This document shows positions 1 through 56,912 of a DNA stretch of 64,000 nucleotides, piece after piece. The stretch is from Dimorphilus gyrociliatus. Its lineage: Eukaryota; Animalia; Annelida. The notes below the pieces were generated by a model. It ran no database searches. It saw nothing but the letters and a program-made list of their open reading frames with translations, and was not told the origin of the DNA. The stretch covers positions 620,001-684,000 of the forward strand of contig CAJFCJ010000012.1 in the NCBI GenBank assembly GCA_904063045.1. Reading direction: 5' to 3'. The position numbers were made by a program, and so were the translations under genes. Position 1 is the first letter of the stretch. Each line of letters begins with the position of its first letter.

Positions 1-3000
1 ATAACGTTATTGACACTTTAGATAGGAGGTCAGTTTTTTTCGAAACACTCTTCAATAAGTCAAGAGAATTAAATGGGAGTTACTTAATTATTCTAAAAAT
101 CTAATTTAACATTCTTAATGACATAGCCTTTTGAAAAAAAACACTATGGAAGTGGTATTAAATTAAATTTAAAAGAGAAGATATTTAAGTATGAGGGAGT
201 GGGTAGGAGAGGAGAGTTCGGAAGACTCTAGCAAAAGAAAATGCAGTTTACGAAAACTTTCGGTAGATGGCGATATTTAACAAGATATTTTTGAGTTTTC
301 TCTCTCTTCCTTTTCAAGTGATAACTAAGATAATACTTCTGTATTCACATTATTCCATTCGAATAGCTATCAATTTACTATAGTATCTATAAACAGGTGT
401 CTTATTAGACTAAAATTTTAATAAATTAGCTGACAATCTCATTAGCTAATATATATTAATAAAGTATGAAAAATATTTCAGCAATCATTTCACCAGGCAC
501 TTTAAATTTTTTCAATTGCCTAGCTTTACAAAAAAAGCAACAACAAAAGAAAGAAACACCTGCCATTCGAAATGAATTATTCAAAATTACCGTTTTATCA
601 TAGTTTATTGTTTTTAATTAGTTCAGTAAGTATTAATTATAAAGATAATAAATAGAAAACAAATATTATATAGTCTATCTTTGATCTTTCTTATGTTAGA
701 TAACATTCACTTGTTAGTTCTTATTCTAATTTATTCGTTTTTTAACGACTGTTCCATTTAGATTATTAATATCTATAGAAGAGAAATTACACATCAAGCA
801 AAATATTGAACAAGTAGTTTTCCAAGGTCCTTAAGTGCGAAACACTTTTTACCTTTCTAAAACATTTCAATTAGCGAAGAATTCTTGGCAAACATTATAT
901 AGAGATAAAGGTCAAAAGCAAGAAGAATCCGGGATCTTTAACCAGGCTTCAGTGATTTTTAATCTAATTGGCGATAATCAATACCCCACTAACTTCAGCT
1001 TAGGCACTATAATAATTCATCATAAATCAAATTTCTTCACTTATTTTCCTCTCTTATTGGATGATGTAATCAGAAAAATAATCTATTGTAGAACTATGTA
1101 ACATCCGTACAACGAACAATAACCAATCAATTGCGTAAGAGTTTATCTTACGCAATCTATAATAATATATTGGAATGGAACAAATCATTTTTTTTCTTAC
1201 TTGTTCCTTGTCTTAAGAAGAACTACAAAATAATTGCAAAAGAATGTATATTATTTCCCATCTAAATAACTATTTACAACATGTCCCATTAATATTCATG
1301 ACTCTTCTTGTCCATTTTCCATGTTCTCCATAAGATGAATTTCCACTTCATAGTGATCGTTATTATTACTATTATTATTCCCACAATCAGATGACTCGTC
1401 ATCTTCTCTATATAATAACAAAAATATAATCGAGTTGATCCTTGTTGACCCCTAAAAATTAATTTCAATAGGAAAAAGTAATAATAACCTTGAACAATCC
1501 ATACACATCTTCAGCATTACAATAGCTAAAAATAATATAAATAATAGGGTCATAACAAATAAAAACGTGTAAAGTCCAAATTGAAAAGCCTGCAAAAATC
1601 TTTTAATTAATAATTATTACAATTAAAAGGATTATTATAGAAAATATCAACTTACCATTATTTCTTTTCTAATTGTAATTTTCTAATATTTTTTCAAAAG
1701 GTTACGTAATAAAAAAATCAGAAGAATTAGCAAGAGAAAAAAATCCTTCTCTAACTTTCTCTCTCACCTAGAAAATCGTCGAAAATAGAGTTTTAACAAA
1801 AAAAATCCAGTATATATGTATACCATGTAACTCTGTCGGACTTCTCTCTTAAATGGACTTGGAGAAGTTATTAGAGAGACTCCACGCAAACTACTAGCTG
1901 AGAAAGAGAAATCATTTTAAGACTCTTTCGCTGGGTAAACTATTTCCTTAACGTCTTTTTTTAGCGGTTACGAATAATTATATTATAGGTATTTTTTTCA
2001 AACTTTAATTAGAAACAAACATCAAATAAAATACCTTTAAGCTAAAAAGAAAATAAGCAATAGAAGGGAAAAGATGATGAAAATCATATCGAACTGTTTA
2101 GCTTTAATCCTTCTAGTCATATAAAAACACTTATGTATGAGAAACGTCTTCACAGAAGCTAAATTTGACCTTTCATCAAGCGTAATGTAAATTATTACAT
2201 AAGAATACTTATTTCAGAAATGATACAATGAAAGAGAAACTTAACGTAAGTAGTCATCAGAGTAGAAGATGATCATCAATATTAGTTAGGGGAAAATAAT
2301 ATTCTTTACAGCTTAACTTGAGAAGTACATCGTTTAAAATAAAATTGAAGATTGTCTTTCTCATTTTCATCTCCTTCTTCATCTTCTTCGTTTTAATTAA
2401 GATCGTCTCATTTATAACGGAGAATGAAAATTCGACGTCTACCTCTTTATTTTTACATGTACTGCAACATTTTTAGTATTAAATATACGTGTATATGAAT
2501 AGTATGTATATAAATATTTATGTGTATATTGTATAGAGGGAACTGACTAAGTCTACTCCAATGGTCTCTATATGTAAATCTCTTTAAGTACCATAAAGAT
2601 AAAGTTTTAACTACAATATAATAATGTTATTGTTAATTATTTGATATGATAATATCGAATTTCCGTTGTTTTATCTATAATTAAAGTAAAAAGAATAACG
2701 AAGGTTTAATTTTTAAACATATTATTGTTAAGTCTATTTGTATCCATTAAAATCTATGTTGTCAATTATTCACGCTTATTGTATACTGATACGGTATCAA
2801 GCTAGTTATCGATTACTTCCTACGCATAATTCATGAAAGATAACTAGCAATAATATTTTAAACATTATCAATAGCATAATTAGGTTACGAATAAGTCATA
2901 TAGAGCATAACTATAGCCATCTAGTGGAAATAGAAAAAGATACTTTGTATGGTCTTGAAGAAATTGTTTATGTGTATTCATCAAGGATCTCTATCTATAC

Positions 3001-3341
3001 AATAAATAACGAATTCTTAGATGATTAAATCTATTGAAGAAGAGACGTTGACGATAATGATAATGTTAGAATTATAATTATGATAGAATGATTAAAAATG
3101 AAAGATAAATAATATAATAAACAAGTAAATATTGTAGGTTTGACAAATATTATTCTATATTTAGTTTGTATCACGTAAGATAAAAGAGAAAAAAATTCGT
3201 TCAAAACGTCACATATTGAACGGACAACATTATGCAAGTGTTGAAATATTGAAAAATATCGTTACTAGTTAAAGAGTACAATTATTGCTGAAATCTTCCT
3301 ACACAAAAAAACTAGCTTTTTTCGTTCTTTTTATACACAAC

Positions 3342-4500
3342 GGAATGTTTTTTTTTTGTTTTTTACATATAACATTATCCCGATTAATGGTTTCTTTTGC
3401 GGAATGAGATTATCGTTTGTTTTGCAAATAAACAAGTCTTAAATACAAATGATTATATAATGAATAGATGAACAGATAATAAGGAACACAAGCTATATGC
3501 ATTTTAATAAAAAATAAAAACCCATTTTAGGATACCAGTCTATTTCATTCATACAGCACCAATCTAATACTTTTTAATACTGAACGCTCGTACGGGTTTG
3601 ATACTAATCAGCACCATCTATCAGGTTAGGGAGCAACTTTCACACTACAAAATAGTTTTAAGCAGTTTTGGCCACTGGAAAGTGAAAAAACATAATAAAA
3701 TAAGGCTTTAAAACGAATTGGATAAACTTTCACTAATTTCCCATGCTTTTCCTTTGTAATGATGTTCATAATTTCAACTTAAAAAGCAGTTTTAAAAAAA
3801 AGAAAGTTAAAGGAAATCAATAGGAAATATAGAAAATTTTCCCAATTGTCTTATGTTAAATAGATAATAATAATAATAATAATACTACATTCACAACACT
3901 TAGTTACATAATTTTTCCTGTACAATTAATACTGAGTTCGGTAAAACGCAATGGGAGGAGAAATTTAAAGCTTGAATATGTCACGTGACTAGATCACTCA
4001 TCCAATCAACTAAGAGTATACTAAATAGCATAGGCAGTGTAACGCTGGTTTTTTGTCTTTACACTATCGGAAGACCTTTGGATTTTGTCCTTAACATAAA
4101 TGCATATGTCTGTACATTAATACATGAAATAAACAAATCAAAGTTTTAAATAGACTGGTATCCGACACCTGAGTTGGCACACAACCAAAAATAATGAAAT
4201 AAAAACAAAAGCAAGATGTTGCATAGATGACTAAATAGAACAAAAGTTAACACTCGACCAGCATTTTTTCATCAATAAAAATGACCACTAAAACAACAAC
4301 GAGCAGTGAGGCTTAAGTACAAGATTGTACGAGGTTGTGCTGTACAAAAATTGAAAGGAAGTACATAGATTATTTAATTGTATGCATATTTTTTTTTCTA
4401 CATATGGTACGCTTCAAAGAGGTAAATCCGAAATAACTATCAGCACGACCTTGCACTCGTCCTTTCATTCCGACTCACTGAATAACCAGAGAAAAGTAGG
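3342..4500 (-). promoter_or_regulatory. ZEB 3'UTR with clustered miRNA target sites
   Basis: The plus strand reproduces miRNA seeds, so the minus-strand mRNA carries the targets: miR-8/200 (3575, 3927), miR-29 (3555, 3610), miR-279 (3986), miR-34 (4033), miR-7 (4069), miR-277 (4097), miR-96 (4174), miR-67/307 (4180), miR-31 (4209), miR-153 (4219), miR-252 (4314), miR-92 offset (4451), miR-1 (3342). The distal UTR boundary is not known. Confidence 0.8.
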
Positions 4501-8075
<3,575 letters not shown>

Positions 8076-9644
8076 TCTCCGTCGTCTGTTCATATGAAAC
8101 AAAGAATAAAATTAATTAACTCTTTCTCAAAATATCTTCATTCTTATCATGAAAGAAAAAAGTTTATTCAATGGGTACTATTAACAGGACACACTTTACA
8201 AAAGTGCATTAAGCCGTTAATTAGTTTAAATTACAAAAATTCTCACTTTTAAATATTAATTAAGCGCAACAGATCAGATAGGAAGATTTTAAATATTCTG
8301 TACACCTTGGAAGATAGGATAGCACAGAAAGGAACCACCCTCTAGATGGCGTATTACATTTGAGGGAAAATATAATAATGTATTCGTAATGCGGATATAA
8401 ATTAGCAAAATCATAGTTGATTTATTAGCGACATAATCTGGAAGATTTTCTCTATAAAATATGGATATTTATCAAATATTATTACTGAAAAGCCATCTGC
8501 AGACGAAAGAGCTATCCTGTATCTAGGTAAATTGTCGCGAATGATTGCAAAAGAAAGTACCATTAAAATCGAATTTCTCTCGGAACCACCCTGCTGATAA
8601 AAAGAAAAACACAAGATACGAAAAGATCAATTTCCGATAGGCTAATTCCTTTCAAAATCCAAACAAACACACGAGAATCGAGAAAGTTAAGATAAGAGAC
8701 TTTCGAAAAAAGTGCCTGATAAAGATAATACAATCGTGTTATTCTACACCAAACAGATGCTTTTTTTCGTAGACAAAGAAGGGTAAAACTATTTCAGTCT
8801 TAAAAAATACTTAATAACAACACGCGCCATAAATCCTCACAGCAAACACAGTACAATACGAGAAAAATGAAAAGATTAACAACTAAAAGGTATATAAACC
8901 TGCTTCAAATTGTACAGGTGAAGTATGTTGAAAAGTAGCGACGACCATTTTCTATTCTACTATTTTTTCTATCTAGGCACCGAAATGCGGAGAAATCAAC
9001 GGGAAAACGCACGCTTCACCTTCTCTTCGAGGAAAATGACGACAAGAGTTCCCCGCTCAGGGGTTTTATAGCAAATGCTATTGGGTTTTTGCGAGAACGA
9101 ACTAACAGTTAAAACACGCCCACATCTATATACGCTTTCTTTAATACTATACCTGAAAGGTTTTGCTAGAGCGAACTAAGGTAGTTTAATTATGATACAG
9201 CTATACCGCTTTTTTCATCTATTTTATGTCACACAAAGGTAGCGGTAGAGAGTAGCGATTGGACAATCGATCAGGTAAAAATATCCAATCATAAAATACC
9301 TGGTTGATTGACATATAGGGCGGATCGAAATTTTTTATATTTTGCCAAGAAAGTGTTACTTATTTTTCGTTAAAGCTCGATATTGTTGTAAATTTATCAA
9401 ATTAAGATATAAGCTAAGTGAAGTATTACGCTTCAAGGAAAGATCGACTTGTATTTATTTATAGAATTTTTTCTTCTCATATATATGGACCGCTTGTGGT
9501 CCGCTTAATTGAGCGTAAAAATGTTTTAACATTCGTGCATCAAATATTTAAACGAGAGTATTTGGGACAATTATATAAAAAATATATAATTATTAAAATT
9601 ATACTTTTTATTAGTTTTGGAGATAAAGTAAATGAAGAGCGAGT

Positions 9645-47233: not shown

Positions 47234-48458
47234 ATGAATAGGTTAATTATCTCCTACGCCGTTATCTGTTTTTCTTCACTATGGGGTAATAAAATATCTT
47301 AGTTTAAGCAAAAGATAAGTTTTTGTTAAATTTATTATAAATCAAAAGTAGTGTGGGCAAAAATATCCATTGACGTGGAAACGCCTAGAAATACACATCT
47401 GACTGGAGATGGACAACCGGAAAGGATAACTGTGAGATTACGAACTGATTCTGACCCAGCGCAATGCTTGTAAGCTATCTCATAATTGAATATCAATTAT
47501 TATTATTGTATTATACATTTGCGTTTGTAGTTTACAACAAACCAAAGATTCTACAGCAAAATTGTTTGATAACTATGTGTTAACTGTGAGAAAAGATGGC
47601 ATAAAGATATTTTACGAACCATTTTTGACTAAATTGAGCGATTCAACTCAAGAATTAACCATTGATGTTTTAGCATTAAGAGATAGCGATATTGAGAAAG
47701 ACGAATATTTTGGTATTAATATATTATGTAGAGAATGGAACGATTCTTCCAAAAAAGTTGGTTATAAATCAATAAGAATAATAAGATTTTTGATATTAGT
47801 TGAAAATAATGTTAATGAACCTTATTTTCGACAAATCGTCAGAGACGATGAGAAAGGCATGCATTATAGATTATGTTACGAATTACATGAAAAATATGGA
47901 AGAATTTTAGAAATTCTTAAGGATGAAAAGTCAAATGTTACTGTAAATGTCCAATTAAAAAAACAATTTATTCAATCAATTTTTATTTCTACATTATTTG
48001 GTAATTTTTATATAAATTCCACTGGTTTCACCATTGCAAATGGCTTTTTTTATTCTTGGGAGAGTAACTTGGCATTCTTTGCTTTAGAACAGAAGGCATT
48101 TATAATAGAATTTACAAAGAATATGCTAGTTATCATAATAAAACATGAAATGCACACTGTTACAGTCTCAATTAAACGGACAGCAAATAAGCTTATTAGC
48201 TCCGAGTATTTTTTTGATATTTCTTTTCCAAGCCTAACCACGTACGAAAGAGTATATGGCCTAATGGGACTTCTTGGAAAGAGGAAATTCACTTTTTATG
48301 ATCCCGTTCAGTCTGGCACAAATGGAGCAAAAGAGACACTAATTGGAATTAACGGCGTATTAAGAAAATCGTATTTCGCCAGAAAACAGGGAAGAGAGTG
48401 CTGGTTTATAGATGTTCAAGACGCATTAGAATCTTTTGCCTTAGATCTAAAATACTAG
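47234..48458 (+). CDS. Secreted protein, beta-sandwich-like N-region plus ITIH C-terminal-like domain (paralog A)
   Basis: Signal exon 47234-47285 (MNRLIISYAVICFSSLWG), exons 47349-47469 and 47531-48458 in frame. EPYF..RLCYEL..ILKD..VTVNVQL..GLMG..CWFID..L..Y follows the ITI heavy-chain C-terminal pattern. Confidence 0.8.
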
Positions 48459-48782: not shown

Positions 48783-50017
48783 ATGAAATTTCTAGCTATT
48801 TTTTCTTTTATCATTTCCTCTATTTCTAACAGTGAGAATGTTTAAAGTCTTAATTATACTTATATTTTATATTTTCCATTATATTTAATAGACGCTAGAG
48901 CTAATTTAACTATTAAAGTCACACCTCCGGCTACCTCTACTTTAAATGAATTCAATAGAGACGCTGAAATAATTGTCCAACAAGGGAGAAATTCTGATCT
49001 TGCCATCTGTCGGTAAGCTTTTGCTTGAACAATTTGATATGGATATAAACATATATATGTTCTGCATCAACTTTTTACAGTCTTCTTTACGAGGGGACGG
49101 CAAAGAGCCAAAAAGATTTTACAGTATATGTAGAGGATCAAGATGGAAATGAAATATACGGCGCATACTCTTTCCCAACAATTCTGATAGATGAGTCGGA
49201 TAGAATGATAATAACTATTAAAATTCTTCTGGACAAACCAAAGACTTCCAAAATGTTAAAAGTGATAGTATCGTGCACAGATGTATTTGATAATACTAGA
49301 AACTACGGTGAAGTATTATTGTATATTCAAGCAGATTCACCAGTGAAAGATGCAATTACTCAAGGTGATCCACATTTTGGTCAGATAATTTTGGACAAAA
49401 ATAGTTCGATTCCTCATAGAATCTGTTACGATGTCAGCGGTAAAAGTGGGCAAAGAATACATATTCTATCAGATGAAAGGATAAATATGTCGGTACATGG
49501 AACATTGATGGATGATTATTATATGCATTCAATTCAAATTTATTCACCTCATTGTAAATTTGATTTAAATACGAAAGAATTAAAATTGGAAAATGGTAAA
49601 TCAATTCAATGGACGTTAAGACAAGATTATATAAAGATAATTGATCGACTGTACAGAATTGAAATAAAAGAATACGAAATCAATTTTGAATATTTTGAAT
49701 TGGCGGGCAATTCTCTAAAATTAATTATATCAAGAAAACAACATTCTATAACTGGCCATTATTTAGATGTTATATTTCCGAATATAGGCTACAATTATGA
49801 AAATATAGGTGGTTTAATAGGCAGAATTGGTAGAAATAATTTTATCTTCTACAAGGCAGTACAATACGGAAATGATTCAAATTATCAAAGGACTGTTATA
49901 GATGTAAATGGTACAAATGTTCAGGCTTTATTAACGGAAAGAAATAAAAACGATTGCTGGTTAGTCGATGTAAAGGATGCTTTAGGATCTATACCACTAT
50001 CAGCATACGTATGTTAG
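48783..50017 (+). CDS. Secreted protein, N-region plus ITIH C-terminal-like domain with GDPH motif (paralog B)
   Basis: Signal exon 48783-48831 (MKFLAIFSFIISSISN), exons 48892-49012 and 49081-50017, same intron phases (1, 2) as paralog A. QGDPHF..ICYDV.G.SG..IHILSD..GGLIG..CWLVD matches ITIH C-terminus DGDPHF..LCFNI..GLLG..CWFV. Confidence 0.85.
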
Positions 50018-52506: not shown

Positions 52507-54937
52507 ATGCGACTTCTACTTTTCAGTCTCTTTATATTTATTTGGCTTGCTAAAAAATATCAATCTACAAATTTCAAACTAGAATGGGATTATATAATTA
52601 TTGGAGCTGGACCCGCTGGCTTACAAATGGGATACTTTTTAAAAGAGTCAAAAAGAGATTATATAATAATTGAGAGGAATAACGAAAGTGGAAGTTTTTT
52701 TCAAAGATTCCCTCGCCATGATCGTTTGATTTCTATCAATAAAAGATTTACTGGTAAAATAAATCAAGAATTTAATTTCAGGCACGATTGGAATTCTCTG
52801 CTAACTCGAAATTTATTAAGATTTAGTGATTTTTCAACTGACTTTTTTCCAAGAAGAAAACAGATGAGAGATTATCTAAGTAATTATTCAAAAACTCATG
52901 ATTTGAATATTATTTACGGAGTAAATGTGCTCAATATTAGTAAAAATAGAGAAGAATTTCGAATGGAAGCTAATGATAAAATACTTAAATGTAAAAGTCT
53001 AATAATAGCTAGTGGATTAAGTAAACCTGTCTTACCGACTTTTGAAGGGAGTCAAGATATGATTGGATACGAGGAAATGCCCTTAGATGAAGATTTTTAT
53101 AAAGGCAAAGATGTCCTTATTCTTGGTAAATTTTAAATAATAACATCAAAGGAAATATCTAAAGACGCTCCACTATCGTCAATCTCTTTTAATTTTCTGT
53201 TTTAGGTCACGGAAATTCGGCTTTTGAAACAGCAAATGCGATTTATGAAAAAACAAATAAAGTTCATATTCTGGGTAGAAATAGAGTAAGACTCGCGTGG
53301 GAGACTCACTATGTAGGAGATATAAGGTTTCTAACACTTAATCTCTTTCCACTAAAAGATAAAATAATAATATCTATTGTTTTAATCATCATTAGAAGTG
53401 TATATAGTCATCTAATTGATACCTATCAATTAAAATCTTTGGATGGAATCTTGGAAGGGGAAATAAAAGATTTCAAATTAAAAAAGGTCAAGGATAAATT
53501 CTATTTCCAGACAGATAATCTGCCTGATACTATGGATAATTTTGCCCTAAGAGAAGGTTATGATATAGTAATAAGATGCTTGGGATTCAAATTTGATAAT
53601 AGTATCTTTTCTGAGTAAGTGCATACTCTTTTGTTATTAACCAATTTTCTTTTCTTTGCTTTCTATTTGTTTTTGTCCTGGTTTAAAAATAGACACGATT
53701 GACAGTTTTTCCTATTAACAATTTCTATTCCTCTATTGTTTCAATGATTATAAAAGGAATAAAAGAGAAAGGAGAGCAAGCCGAAAAAAAACACAATTAT
53801 AAAGTGTTATTTGTAAATAGGCTATTCTCTAAATAATAAAATATTATTAATTGTATATGATTATTATCTTCTTTTCTTTTCCCTCTAAAAAGCTTAATGT
53901 CACCAGCATTGACAAAAAGTGAAAAATATCCTGAAATAGATGATAAATTTCAATCAACAAACATTGAAAACCTCTATTTTATTGGAACAACTGCTCATTC
54001 TTTAGATTATAGAAGATCATCAGGAGGGTTTATTCATGGGTTTAGATATATGAGTAAGTATATATATTATATATTAATATAAATTAATATTTATGTATAG
54101 TCAATTATCTTTAACATTTTCTTTTCTTTCCCTTCCCCTTCCCTTGTATACTAGTCGAGAACTTTCATAAGAATCTTGAAAGGAAAAATCATAATACCCT
54201 TTGGCCTATTTCCACTTACAAATTAACAGAATTAATTACTGTCATTCTAAAGAGAATTAATGAAGTTAGTTCACTGTATCAAATGCACGGAGTTCTCGGT
54301 GATATAATAGCTATTGATAGGTAGGTGTTCTAAAGTGAGATGTAATTTATATCTCTAATTTTATTATTATTTCAGAGATAACAAACAATTTCATTACTTT
54401 GAAAATTATTTAATATCTAATTTGCATAATTTTGAAAATGTTACCGGTTATCCCATAAACGATGTATTAATTCTAGTATTAAATTATGGCAAAACGTTTA
54501 CAACACCCGGAAATGACGTTTTAAGAATAGACCGAGCTACTGGGGTCTTGGAGGAAGCTCATCTCAGTAATTTTCTTCATCCTCAGTTTTACTATTATGA
54601 AAAATTACCAACAAGTAAATTCATATATATATTTAATTTTCAATTACATTAGTGCTTACTAGACATTACGTTCATTCATACAGAAGGACGAATGCTGAAT
54701 AAACGTAGAGACGCTATCTTGCCATTGCCCGATAAGATACACTATATCTTAGAAGATTTTCACACAACGTGGACGTCTCCTACGACCCATATTCTCCCTC
54801 TTCGAAGATTTTTAGAAAATTGCACAAAAACAGATTTAAGACATTATAAGTCTAGTGATTGTTTTCTGTCGTCATTTGTTGATGGAACTTTTCCCATTGA
54901 TTGTATAAATTATCACCAAAGTTCATATATTGTATAG
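52507..54937 (+). CDS. FOXRED2: FAD-dependent oxidoreductase domain-containing protein 2
   Basis: Signal peptide, IIIGAGPAGLQ Rossmann motif, FPRHDRLISINKRFTG..RHDWNSLL, G-H-GNSAFETA..RLAWETHYVGDIR, TYQLKSLDG, LDYRRSSGGFIHGFRY and FLHP motifs over about 7 exons with short introns. Confidence 0.93.
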
Positions 54938-56096: not shown

Positions 56097-56912
56097 CTAT
56101 GAAAAGTTGTCTATATGACCAATAATTTTCATTATCTCAAGTTTACAGCATTGAGAGCTTTGTCTCTTAACCATATCACATCGAATAATTGATTTATAAG
56201 AACTTGTATTAGTTGAGAAATTTAAATCAACCATTTCTTCTAGTTCGTCTTCAGCTTTTCCGAAATGAGCAACATTTTCAATTTTCCACGATAAATTTCG
56301 CAGAAACCCTACAATTCCTTTCCTAGTGTCGTTCTTTGGATTTAATCTAGGGAAACAGATTGACAAAAAGAAGGCTCCTTCCTTATATTCCCTTCTCGTA
56401 ATTCTCACGTCAAGAAAATTTGATTCTGTTTCAAGCTTAATCAATATGCTATTCTTTTCAAACATAGCTGTAACATTTTTTGAGGTCAATTTTCCTAGTC
56501 TAAAGTTTTCCCAGGCAACTAATTCGTTACTTCCAACTTTAAATCCTTTGGTATTAATTAAAAAGTTTTTCGATTTAAAGATGATGTTAACTGAGTCAAT
56601 ATGATGTCCATCAAATGTTGTTGCTGTGATACTGAGTCCCATAGAGTCGTCACTGAAAAGTCGAACTGCACCTCCAGTTTCAATTCCAACATCATAACAT
56701 ATAGGGAAGTAGCCATGATCTCCAACTGCTATCATATGATATATTTGGGGTTGACTATCTAAAGAACCTAGTATGGCTATAATGAAAAATAAGAAACATA
56801 AGGTTTATGGAATTGAATTGTGGCAATAATAAATGTAAGTTTATTAGAAAAAAAGATACTTACTACTGATGAGAGCGAAACCAACGAAGGACGACAAAGA
56901 AAATACCTTCAT
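56097..56912 (-). CDS. Secreted stand-alone ITIH C-terminal-like domain protein (paralog C)
   Basis: Signal exon 56912-56864 (MKVFSLSSFVGFALIS) splices in phase 1 to 56776-56097. SQPQIYHM..FPICYDVG..VRLFSD..FLSICFP..GIVG..C is homologous to paralogs A and B. Confidence 0.78.

Follow-up and report, generated by a model that had tools for sequence, protein, structure and literature searches.

The 64-kb stretch of DNA from Dimorphilus gyrociliatus analysed here (the window) carries on its minus strand a gene for a ZEB/zfh1-type factor. Pfam places zinc fingers at the N-terminus (7721-8014), a homeodomain in the upstream exons (5477-5920) and C-terminal C2H2 zinc fingers in the last coding exon (4504-4731, followed by the stop codon TGA at 4501-4503). 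These exons are joined by spliced RNA contigs, and the arrangement is that of ZEB/zfh1. Where the spliced contigs link 4731 with 5233, the intron shows CT..AC ends. The best matches of the protein search bear the ZEB-type C-terminal finger motif, and its relatives carry the name zinc finger homeobox protein 1/2.

The 3'UTR of the ZEB mRNA is delineated by several RNA runs. A spliced contig from run X16 spans 3348-4731, another from run X3 spans 3131-3730 and 3896-4731, and the pieces from run X4 span 3192-3395, 3922-4370 and 4532-4731. None of the RNA runs gives coverage in 2801-3130. Near the end of the UTR, AATAAA and ATTAAA are both missing and only variant PAS-like hexamers are found, at 3149 and 3156. 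Since the spliced contigs reach ~3131, every miRNA site claimed for this region in an earlier note is within the mature ZEB mRNA. That note had made its reading depend on the poly(A) site, which was not to be proximal to ~4400, and the transcript indeed passes through all of the sites. Run X1, which holds 29% of the sampled words, yields only 20-nt scraps at the locus. The features of the region are collected in Table 1.

Table 1. Features of the ZEB 3'UTR and the adjoining coding exon (positions in the window; dG in kcal/mol)
Feature	Position	Strand	Description
Last coding exon, ZEB/zfh1-type gene	4501..4731	-	Translation; Pfam zf-C2H2 and zf-H2C2_2
3'UTR of ZEB mRNA, ~1.37 kb	3131..4500	-	Spliced RNA contigs; plus strand is the miRNA sense
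miR-92 centred site	4451..4462	-	12 contiguous pairs, nt 3-14; no pair at nt 2; dG -22.7
miR-252	4314-4320	-	Seed only; not conserved
miR-31 (bgl-miR-72) near-full site	4209..4230	-	21/23 nt paired; dG -26.7
miR-153 8mer	4219-4226	-	Overlaps miR-31 site; seed only
miR-67 seed	4180-4186	-	Adjoins miR-96; seed only; broken in L001
miR-96 7mer-m8	4174..4180	-	Seed only; conserved in L001
miR-277 8mer (nt 1-9)	4097..4105	-	Seed only; 9/9 conserved, remainder of site varies
miR-7	4069..4088	-	7mer-m8 4069-4075; 5-nt loop; 8 contiguous pairs, nt 13-20, at 4081-4088
miR-34	4033..4050	-	nt 2-9 at 4033-4040; 3-nt target loop; 7 pairs, nt 15-21, at 4044-4050
miR-279, TDMD-trigger geometry	3986..4004	-	nt 1-10 paired; 3-nt miRNA bulge; nt 14-22 paired to last base
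miR-8/200	3927..3945	-	8mer 3927-3934; 3'-supplementary pairing, nt 12-17, at 3940-3945
Non-conserved UTR spacer	3700..3915	-	~50% identity to L001; (AAT)n run; between two conserved modules
Distal conserved module	3555..3625	-	miR-29 7mer-m8 3555-3561; miR-8 8mer 3575-3582; miR-29 3610-3617
Further distal seeds	3229..3490	-	miR-1993 3229; miR-137 8mer 3283; miR-1 3342; miR-317 3484; beyond L001 contig end

The sites were evaluated with 56 published guide strands from Biomphalaria glabrata (Table II of PMC7328434). Pairing was computed with these Biomphalaria sequences, which are not the host's own, except for miR-7, for which the canonical form, one base off the Biomphalaria entry, was used. 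Checked in this way, the coordinates proposed in the earlier note are all correct on the plus strand (miRNA sense), as are the spacings of 59, 47, 36 and 28 nt that separate the miR-8, miR-279, miR-34, miR-7 and miR-277 sites. The 3' end of miR-279 and the centre of miR-92 are found as the exact mollusc forms, and these are the only features that speak for a spiralian affinity.

In the whole UTR (3131-4500), the 56 guides give 18 seed matches (7mer-m8 or 8mer, nine of them 8mers) from 16 families. Dinucleotide shuffles contain 4.45 +/- 2.07 matches and 0/3000 of them get to 18, permuted seeds give 3.3 matches and the antisense strand of the UTR gives 6. When the window is divided into 110 strand-tiles, the UTR tile ranks at the top with 15 matches, where the average is 3.65 and the runner-up has 8. 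The sites are about four times commoner than chance and are so in the target-sense orientation only. The seeds that are conserved are not unusually open by RNAplfold accessibility (percentiles 0.01-0.57).

These counts bear on the reading in which the string of sites is a product of chance or an artefact of the miRNA sequences used in the earlier note, or in which the plus strand corresponds to miRNA genes or to an antisense RNA. The earlier note took its miRNA sequences from conserved orthologues, and the matches to miR-67, miR-252, miR-281-5p and miR-9-3p behave like chance. On the other hand, no shuffle and none of the 109 other strand-tiles equals the observed count, the matches are confirmed with published miRNA sequences, and the orientation of the splice sites assigns the region to a minus-strand mRNA. 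As there is no Rfam match at E<=1 on either strand of 2800-4800, the sites are not miRNA genes. The transcript strand, the shuffles, the tiles and Rfam refute this reading, the probability of which is negligible.

Around half of the sites are plain seed sites. Pairing past the seed is absent for miR-277, miR-96, miR-67, miR-153, miR-252, miR-29 at 3555 and miR-8 at 3575-3582. The 3' pairing is significant for miR-279 (P<2.5e-4), miR-34 (P=0.0025) and canonical miR-7 (P=0.004), and the pairing scores of miR-31 and miR-92 are each above those of all 81 control tiles. Nominal values only are obtained for miR-8 at the 3927 site (3' pairing, P=0.03) and for miR-29 at 3610 (energy, P=0.03), the latter adding 5 pairs at 3621-3625. 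The earlier proposal that six sites or more have additional 3' matches is borne out for five to seven, five being significant and the miR-8 and miR-29 sites nominal. In the published definition, centred sites lack a full seed and form an unbroken stretch of 11 or more pairs to nt 3/4-14/15. The miR-92 site, with contiguous central pairing and without nt 2, belongs to this class.

Conservation was assessed in one sister species (contig L001/L002, ~83% UTR identity), complemented with the variant listing of a 97% relative, and the tests are therefore modest (P 0.01-0.05). Deeper UTR orthologues were sought and this sister contig was the sole one found. Ten of the 14 comparable seeds are intact in L001, compared with 45.5% of all 7-mers (P=0.046), and the 97 seed positions show 4 differences versus 16.8 expected (P=0.01, circular-shift test). 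Among the paired positions 0/143 are changed, versus 2/13 of the loop positions (P=0.006, for sites picked after conservation was seen). The predicted paired arms are preserved in the sister species while the loop bases drift. The miR-279 site is identical at 19/19 positions and the miR-92 site at 12/12, and the miR-34 site is kept. At the miR-8 site at 3927-3945 one loop base varies and the arms are constant, and at the miR-7 site the loop base 4077 is changed in both X3 and L001 with both arms constant. The seeds of the distal module are all identical and the surrounding 3550-3649 is identical at 98/100 positions. The seeds broken in L001 are those of miR-67, miR-252, miR-281-5p and miR-9-3p, which equals the number of chance matches expected. 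The non-conserved miR-67 and miR-252 seeds are probably chance matches.

The UTR is probably a conserved, strand-specific platform with some ten to twelve predicted sites for ancient miRNAs, which would repress ZEB combinatorially. The families are miR-8/200 (two sites), miR-29 (two sites), miR-279, miR-34, miR-7, miR-277, miR-96, miR-31/miR-153 and miR-92. The description of this UTR as a multi-miRNA hub is retained: several sites pair well past the seed, and all of them are in the transcribed UTR. Repression by miRNAs is the default reading for most sites. Argonaute-miRNA complexes bound to the UTR would call in the standard machinery for deadenylation and decay, and adjacent sites, 28-59 nt apart, are near enough for cooperation. 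Consequently, the expression of any of several differentiation-associated miRNAs could contribute to a combinatorial shutdown of ZEB.

The same abundance of sites and families has suggested a stoichiometric sponge (ceRNA), in which the ZEB mRNA titrates many miRNAs and derepresses their other targets. A ceRNA role has been proposed for mammalian ZEB2. In addition, the ZEB contig has an assembler depth of 383 in one run versus 9-25 for neighbouring contigs, although assembler contig depths are not usable to rank expression. The UTR offers just one or two sites per family, and quantitative ceRNA work indicates that one mRNA rarely adds enough sites to shift miRNA occupancy. A sponge is thus very improbable.

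A minority of the sites would pair the 3' half of the miRNA around a central bulge, clearly for miR-279 and in a borderline manner for miR-7 and miR-34. This geometry was compared with the published criteria for TDMD triggers, which are pairing of seed nt 2-8, a central bulge of >0 and <7 nt, an unbroken stretch in the 3' part of the miRNA of 7 or more pairs within the last 8 nt or of 9 or more pairs, and a duplex energy below -16 kcal/mol (methods of PMC10102002). A seed with a central bulge is present at the miR-279, miR-7 and miR-34 sites. It is absent from the miR-31 site, where the centre is paired and the sole bulge is at nt 14, and from the miR-92 site, where nt 2 is unpaired. The required 3' pairing is found for miR-279 (nt 14-22), for canonical miR-7 only if a G:U pair is counted, and not for miR-34, miR-8, miR-29, miR-277, miR-96, miR-153 or miR-252. 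The energies of miR-279 (-27.2), miR-34 (-27.6), miR-31 (-26.7) and miR-7 (-22.5) are all below the threshold. The miR-279 site satisfies all four criteria and gives the strongest duplex in a scan of both strands of the window. By contrast, miR-34 narrowly fails with 7 pairs that stop short of the 3' end, and the final four bases of miR-7 stay unpaired. The TDMD geometry described in the earlier note thus stands clearly for miR-279 and marginally for miR-7 and miR-34, and does not apply to miR-31, which resembles a slicing site, to miR-92, which is a seedless centred site, or to the half of the sites that have only a seed.

The extended sites for miR-279, miR-7, miR-34 and perhaps miR-31 could chiefly drive a ZSWIM8/Dora-dependent destruction of these miRNAs and so guard the ZEB-expressing state. 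The quality of the miR-279 duplex argues for this role, as does the fact that repression does not require such long 3' pairing. Moreover, miR-279, miR-7, miR-29 and miR-12 are TDMD substrates in other systems, and sites with long 3' pairing for miR-7, miR-12 and miR-29 are found in other ZEB-like loci (see below). However, only one site of the window passes the criteria cleanly, the criteria with G:U allowed are matched by chance at ~0.24 per kb, and the 3' end of miR-34, the last four bases of miR-7 and the paired centre of miR-31 depart from them. A UTR devoted chiefly to miRNA destruction is accordingly rather unlikely. For the miR-279 site at least, an additional action as a TDMD trigger is a serious possibility, with a probability a little short of even. 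Such an action would create a double-negative loop between ZEB and miR-279.

The near-full miR-31 site suggests a different outcome, in which a catalytic Argonaute cuts the ZEB mRNA through near-perfect pairing across nt 9-13, an event compatible with the hub. Nearly the whole miRNA is paired, the centre included, and the site is identical at 22/22 positions in L001. Against cleavage, nt 2 forms a G:U wobble, G14 is singly bulged and the RNA contigs are unbroken across the site. The one-base bulge also creates the miR-153 8mer, and the conservation may therefore serve the miR-153 site. Slicing is improbable. The most likely arrangement is a hub for combinatorial repression in which one to three sites may also be TDMD triggers.

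The regulation of ZEB by miR-200 is the best-known miRNA switch of cell-state control. In Drosophila, miR-8 represses zfh1 and the length of the 3'UTR decides the sensitivity (PMC3041954, PMC4551350, PMC5919756). The gene and the miRNA families of this axis (ZEB1/2; zfh1-long) are those of the window, which has two conserved miR-8 8mers. Here, however, miR-8 is one of about ten conserved families in ~1 kb, several of which pair far past the seed. The human ZEB1 mRNA has been proposed to induce TDMD of miR-200c (PMC10709323). The idea of a ZEB mRNA that degrades its own repressor is the same, but the miR-8 sites of the window reach no more than 6 supplementary pairs (nt 12-17), which places them outside the TDMD criteria.

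The zfh1 3'UTR of Drosophila is a validated, Dora/ZSWIM8-dependent TDMD trigger for miR-12 (PMC10102002), a precedent correctly invoked in the earlier note, and is among only a handful of validated triggers. The window shares with it the orthologous mRNA, the location in the 3'UTR and the combination of seed, central bulge and 3'-end pairing, as predicted here from sequence. Unlike in zfh1, there is no miR-12 seed in the window and the TDMD-like site is for miR-279. Other TDMD pairs in flies are Kah with miR-279 and h with miR-7 (PMC10102002, PMC12573233), and Kah is described as a 'trigger cluster' for miR-9b together with the family of miR-279 (PMC12573233). Both Kah and the window gene encode EMT-type zinc-finger factors whose 3'UTR addresses, by prediction in the case of the window, more than one miRNA family, including miR-279, with sites a few hundred nucleotides apart. 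Kah belongs to the Snail family whereas the window gene is a ZEB, and the Kah trigger makes 3-5 pairs in the 3' half of miR-279 versus 9-10, to the last base, in the window. In other systems, Cyrano is reported to direct TDMD of miR-7 and libra that of miR-29b. The ancient miRNAs of the vertebrate pairs Cyrano-miR-7 and libra/NREP-miR-29b also have extended sites here, miR-7 in the window and in two of the other ZEB-like loci (L005 and L007) and miR-29 in L005. The vertebrate triggers have one site each, in a transcript that is either dedicated and non-coding or unrelated, whereas the sites of the window lie amid many ordinary ones in a ZEB mRNA, and its miR-29 sites, unlike those of libra/NREP, have little 3' pairing.

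The window presents the ZEB gene of a distant invertebrate with a dense conserved cluster of sites, among them a miR-279 site with nearly complete pairing. If these sites only repress, the UTR is an ordinary, though unusually rich, case of combinatorial miRNA control. If some of them are triggers acting as a cluster, the mRNA of a progenitor/mesenchymal factor would destroy several differentiation miRNAs while being repressed by others.

Seven other ZEB-like loci were compared with the window. No alignable UTR sequence is shared with them, the common words being at most 12 nt, close to the chance level. Three candidate similarities were discarded: 11-mers shared at the miR-34 site lack the seed, a collinear order of sites between the window and L005 is not demonstrable, and a seed-rich stretch of L003 (3900-4600) is a tandem repeat and not a hub. 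Because the published criteria are permissive, a stricter Watson-Crick version was used for the count across loci. The seven loci contain 13 target-sense sites with a seed and at least 7 nt of extended pairing, versus 0, 2 and 3 in controls of equal size. The extended sites are for miR-7, miR-12, miR-29 and miR-279, nearly all of them are target-sense, and the density of sites is strand-specific as in the window. The miR-7 sites of these loci have 11-12 nt of 3' pairing and those of miR-12 have 8-9 nt. Counting the window together with L005 and L007, the 3' pairing of miR-7 extends over 8-12 nt. Sites for miR-12 with a seed, a central bulge and 3'-end pairing occur in L005 and L009, and L005 has miR-29 sites with 7-8 nt that reach the 3' end.

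This comparison suggests that sites combining the seed with the 3' end of miR-7, miR-12, miR-29 and miR-279 recur in ZEB 3'UTRs. They offer concrete candidates with which to ask if TDMD by ZEB mRNAs is an ancestral trait and if a single UTR can act on several families. A more speculative and on balance doubtful extension is that ZEB/zfh1 3'UTRs are ancient multi-family clusters of TDMD triggers in which the miRNA partners have been rewired between lineages. The window would then have miR-279, miR-7 and miR-34 as its partners, an arthropod-like locus would have miR-7, miR-12, miR-29 and miR-216, and flies would have miR-12.

On the minus strand, the ZEB/zfh1-type gene lies upstream of the studied stretch, which forms its downstream side. 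The junctions 4731-5233 and 5396-5476/5477 are present in contigs assembled from three RNA sequencing runs, and the CT..AC intron ends at these joins indicate that the contigs represent spliced minus-strand RNA. Past the stop codon, the contigs continue unspliced as far as 3348 in run X16 and 3131 in run X3, the latter from a relative about 97% identical. The interval 2801-3130 is without RNA coverage in any run examined, which together with the unspliced contigs delimits a ZEB 3'UTR of ~1.37 kb (3131-4500) that takes in all the sites of an earlier note; the note's refuting condition, a poly(A) site proximal to ~4400, is not borne out, given the reach of the contigs. A neighbouring minus-strand gene at 666-2386 (introns of 56-137 nt, CT..AC ends), also found in X16 contigs, bounds the ZEB 3' end. 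Since the mRNA is the reverse complement of the plus strand, the resemblance of the latter to mature miRNAs makes the mRNA complementary to them. An Rfam search for miRNA hairpins in 2800-4800 gave no match, so the plus strand encodes none there.

Positions of ZEB gene features in the window and of the extended-site cluster in a ZEB-like locus
Feature	Locus	Position	Strand	Remark
Last coding exon, ZEB gene	Window	4504-4731	Minus	Two to three C2H2 fingers, ZEB-type C-terminal motif
Stop codon TGA, ZEB gene	Window	4501-4503	Minus	tca on the plus strand
Homeodomain, upstream ZEB exons	Window	5477-5920	Minus	
N-terminal fingers, upstream ZEB exons	Window	7721-8014	Minus	
Extended-site cluster	L005	6885-6919, 8585-8613, 8750-8779, 9168-9195		miR-12 site in 5355-9354

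The earlier note had described this UTR as a multi-miRNA hub, and all of its site positions proved correct when rescanned with 56 guide strands of Biomphalaria glabrata (PMC7328434, Table II), from which the animal's own forms may differ. The scan adds a second miR-8 8mer at 3575, distal-UTR seeds for miR-137, miR-1, miR-317 and miR-1993, and further seeds for miR-281-5p and miR-9-3p. The region 3131-4500 contains 18 seed matches of 16 families (nine 8mers), against 4.45 ± 2.07 in dinucleotide shuffles (18 reached in 0/3000) and 6 on the antisense strand. Permuted seeds on 3348-4500 give 3.3 matches compared with 15 for the true seeds, and this count places the UTR at the top of 110 tiles of 1153 nt covering both strands of the 64-kb window (mean 3.65, runner-up 8). 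The miRNA-site hub in the ZEB 3'UTR is real and strand-specific. The predicted accessibility of the conserved seeds is unremarkable.

Pairing beyond the seed was scored by the longest uninterrupted run of matches to the 3' part of the miRNA, each site being compared with random genomic 22-mers. The miR-279 site is the most outstanding (nt 1-10 and 14-22 paired, 3-nt miRNA bulge; P<2.5e-4, dG -27.2), and forms the strongest duplex in a scan of both strands of the 64-kb window. The miR-34 site pairs nt 15-21 in 7 pairs (P=0.0025, dG -27.6), and in X3 an additional G after window position 4051 would let the last two miR-34 bases re-pair past a one-base bulge. The miR-7 site pairs nt 13-20 in 8 pairs (P=0.004) given the canonical U at position 18, where the Biomphalaria entry is one base off. 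The six pairs of miR-8 at 3927 (nt 12-17, P=0.03) are 3'-supplementary pairing of the ordinary kind, and the miR-29 site at 3610 reaches nominal significance in energy alone. In a local-alignment scan with no seed requirement, the miR-31 and miR-92 sites each exceed 81/81 control tiles. The former pairs 21/23 nt, with a G:U wobble at nt 2, a single bulged G and a paired, slicing-like centre; the latter has nt 3-14 in 12 contiguous pairs and no seed. The miR-153 8mer overlapping the miR-31 match is created by the single-base bulge of that match. The miR-277, miR-96, miR-67, miR-153, miR-252 and remaining miR-8 and miR-29 sites are seed-only. The stretch 3664-3684, identical in the sister-species contig L001, resembles a miR-96/183-family site with an extra target base in the seed (TTGGC, extra C, ACTGGAA) and could be a bulged-seed site outside the canonical count.

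The published pairing criteria for triggers of target-directed miRNA decay (TDMD) are a paired seed (nt 2-8), either 7 or more consecutive pairs among the final 8 nt or 9 or more in a row, 1-6 nt of central bulge and a duplex energy below -16 kcal/mol (PMC10102002). The earlier note's degradation platform for a whole miRNA set is unsupported in the window. Of the UTR sites, only miR-279 passes cleanly. Canonical miR-7 passes only if a G:U pair is counted, and miR-34 narrowly misses. With G:U allowed, ~0.24 chance hits per kb are obtained, which makes these criteria a weak predictor.

The homeodomain exon is 95% identical on the sister-species Logan genomic contigs L001 and L002 (protein search). 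The L001 alignment covers 3490-4520 and consists of conserved modules (3550-3699, 143/150 identical; 3950-4349, 364/400; 4400-4499, 94/100) and a spacer (3700-3899) of ~50% identity; the intron is mostly not alignable. Ten of 14 comparable seeds are intact, versus 45.5% of all 7-mers (P=0.046, one sister species), and seed positions carry 4 differences where circular shifts predict 16.8 (P=0.01). The broken seeds (miR-67, miR-281-5p, miR-9-3p and miR-252, the last also broken in X3) equal in number the ~3.3 chance hits expected. In bipartite sites, picked after conservation was seen, arms show 0/143 changes and loops 2/13 (P=0.006). Blocks 4236-4313, 3583-3609, 3629-3700 and 4400-4450 lack seeds for the 56 miRNAs, are 90-97% identical to L001 and may be bound by lineage-specific miRNAs or by RNA-binding proteins.

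Seven further ZEB-like loci (L003-L009) were retrieved from metagenome assemblies via the conserved C-terminal finger exon. Downstream seed counts are strand-biased in several: target-sense and antisense matches number 29 and 15 in L005, 36 and 15 in L007, and 31 and 11 in L009, over 4 kb compared with 1.37 kb for the window (18 and 6). L005:7850-9250, a span picked after the counts were seen, holds 18 seeds versus 5.9 ± 2.5 shuffled. Extended sites, defined by a canonical seed with 7 or more contiguous Watson-Crick pairs to the 3' half of the miRNA, number 13 in target sense, whereas three controls of equal size give 0, 2 and 3; leaving out the window, the figures are 10 against 0, 2 and 2. 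They include miR-7 (11 and 12 pairs; L005, L007), miR-12 (9 and 8; L005, L009), two miR-29 sites reaching the 3' end in L005 (8 and 7), miR-279 in L003 (7), miR-216b (L005) and miR-750 (L007). Not part of this tally is a miR-8 8mer in L007 with 9 pairs, which came from a different alignment scan. The strand bias suggests that these sites are putatively within UTRs. For miR-12, which has sites in L005 and L009, fly zfh1 is a validated trigger.

The large ORF of L005 is closest to arthropod zfh1 clusters. Five or six extended sites lie 3' of its stop (miR-7, miR-12, two miR-29, miR-216b, miR-981), denser than in the window, and its miR-7 site directly adjoins a miR-8 8mer. The miR-12 site at L009:6738-6765 (an 8mer, and nt 13-20 in 8 pairs) is at most 600 nt past the ZEB-like stop. 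L003:7050-7125 comprises three similar ~25-nt tandem units, two with the full miR-279 seed, and an 11-nt repeat array at L003:4100-4300 mimics miR-92 and miR-281 seeds, inflating local counts.

These sequences are best read as a conserved hub for combinatorial repression of ZEB, which would widen the known miR-8/200-ZEB/zfh1 relationship (PMC3041954, PMC4551350, PMC5919756) to about ten ancient families. The miR-279 site has the geometry of a trigger; for miR-7 and miR-34 this is less certain. Repression is possible without long 3' pairing, and sites with such pairing recur in ZEB-like loci; both points lend plausibility to a role in TDMD for some of the sites. The prediction also draws on fly zfh1, a validated TDMD trigger (PMC10102002), and on miR-279, miR-7, miR-29 and miR-12 being TDMD substrates elsewhere. 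For the miR-279 site itself, the chance of such a role is put somewhat short of even. A stoichiometric sponge role of the ZEB mRNA, also raised earlier, is unlikely.

Elsewhere in the window, three paralogous single-exon ORFs (47562-48458, 49205-50017, 56097-56735) form one family, for which a search for named relatives found none and returned a single Logan protein, 56% identical. The ORF at 52507-53136 is pyridine-nucleotide-disulphide oxidoreductase-like, and the Atlas clusters closest to it come from bacteria or haptophytes, not animals.
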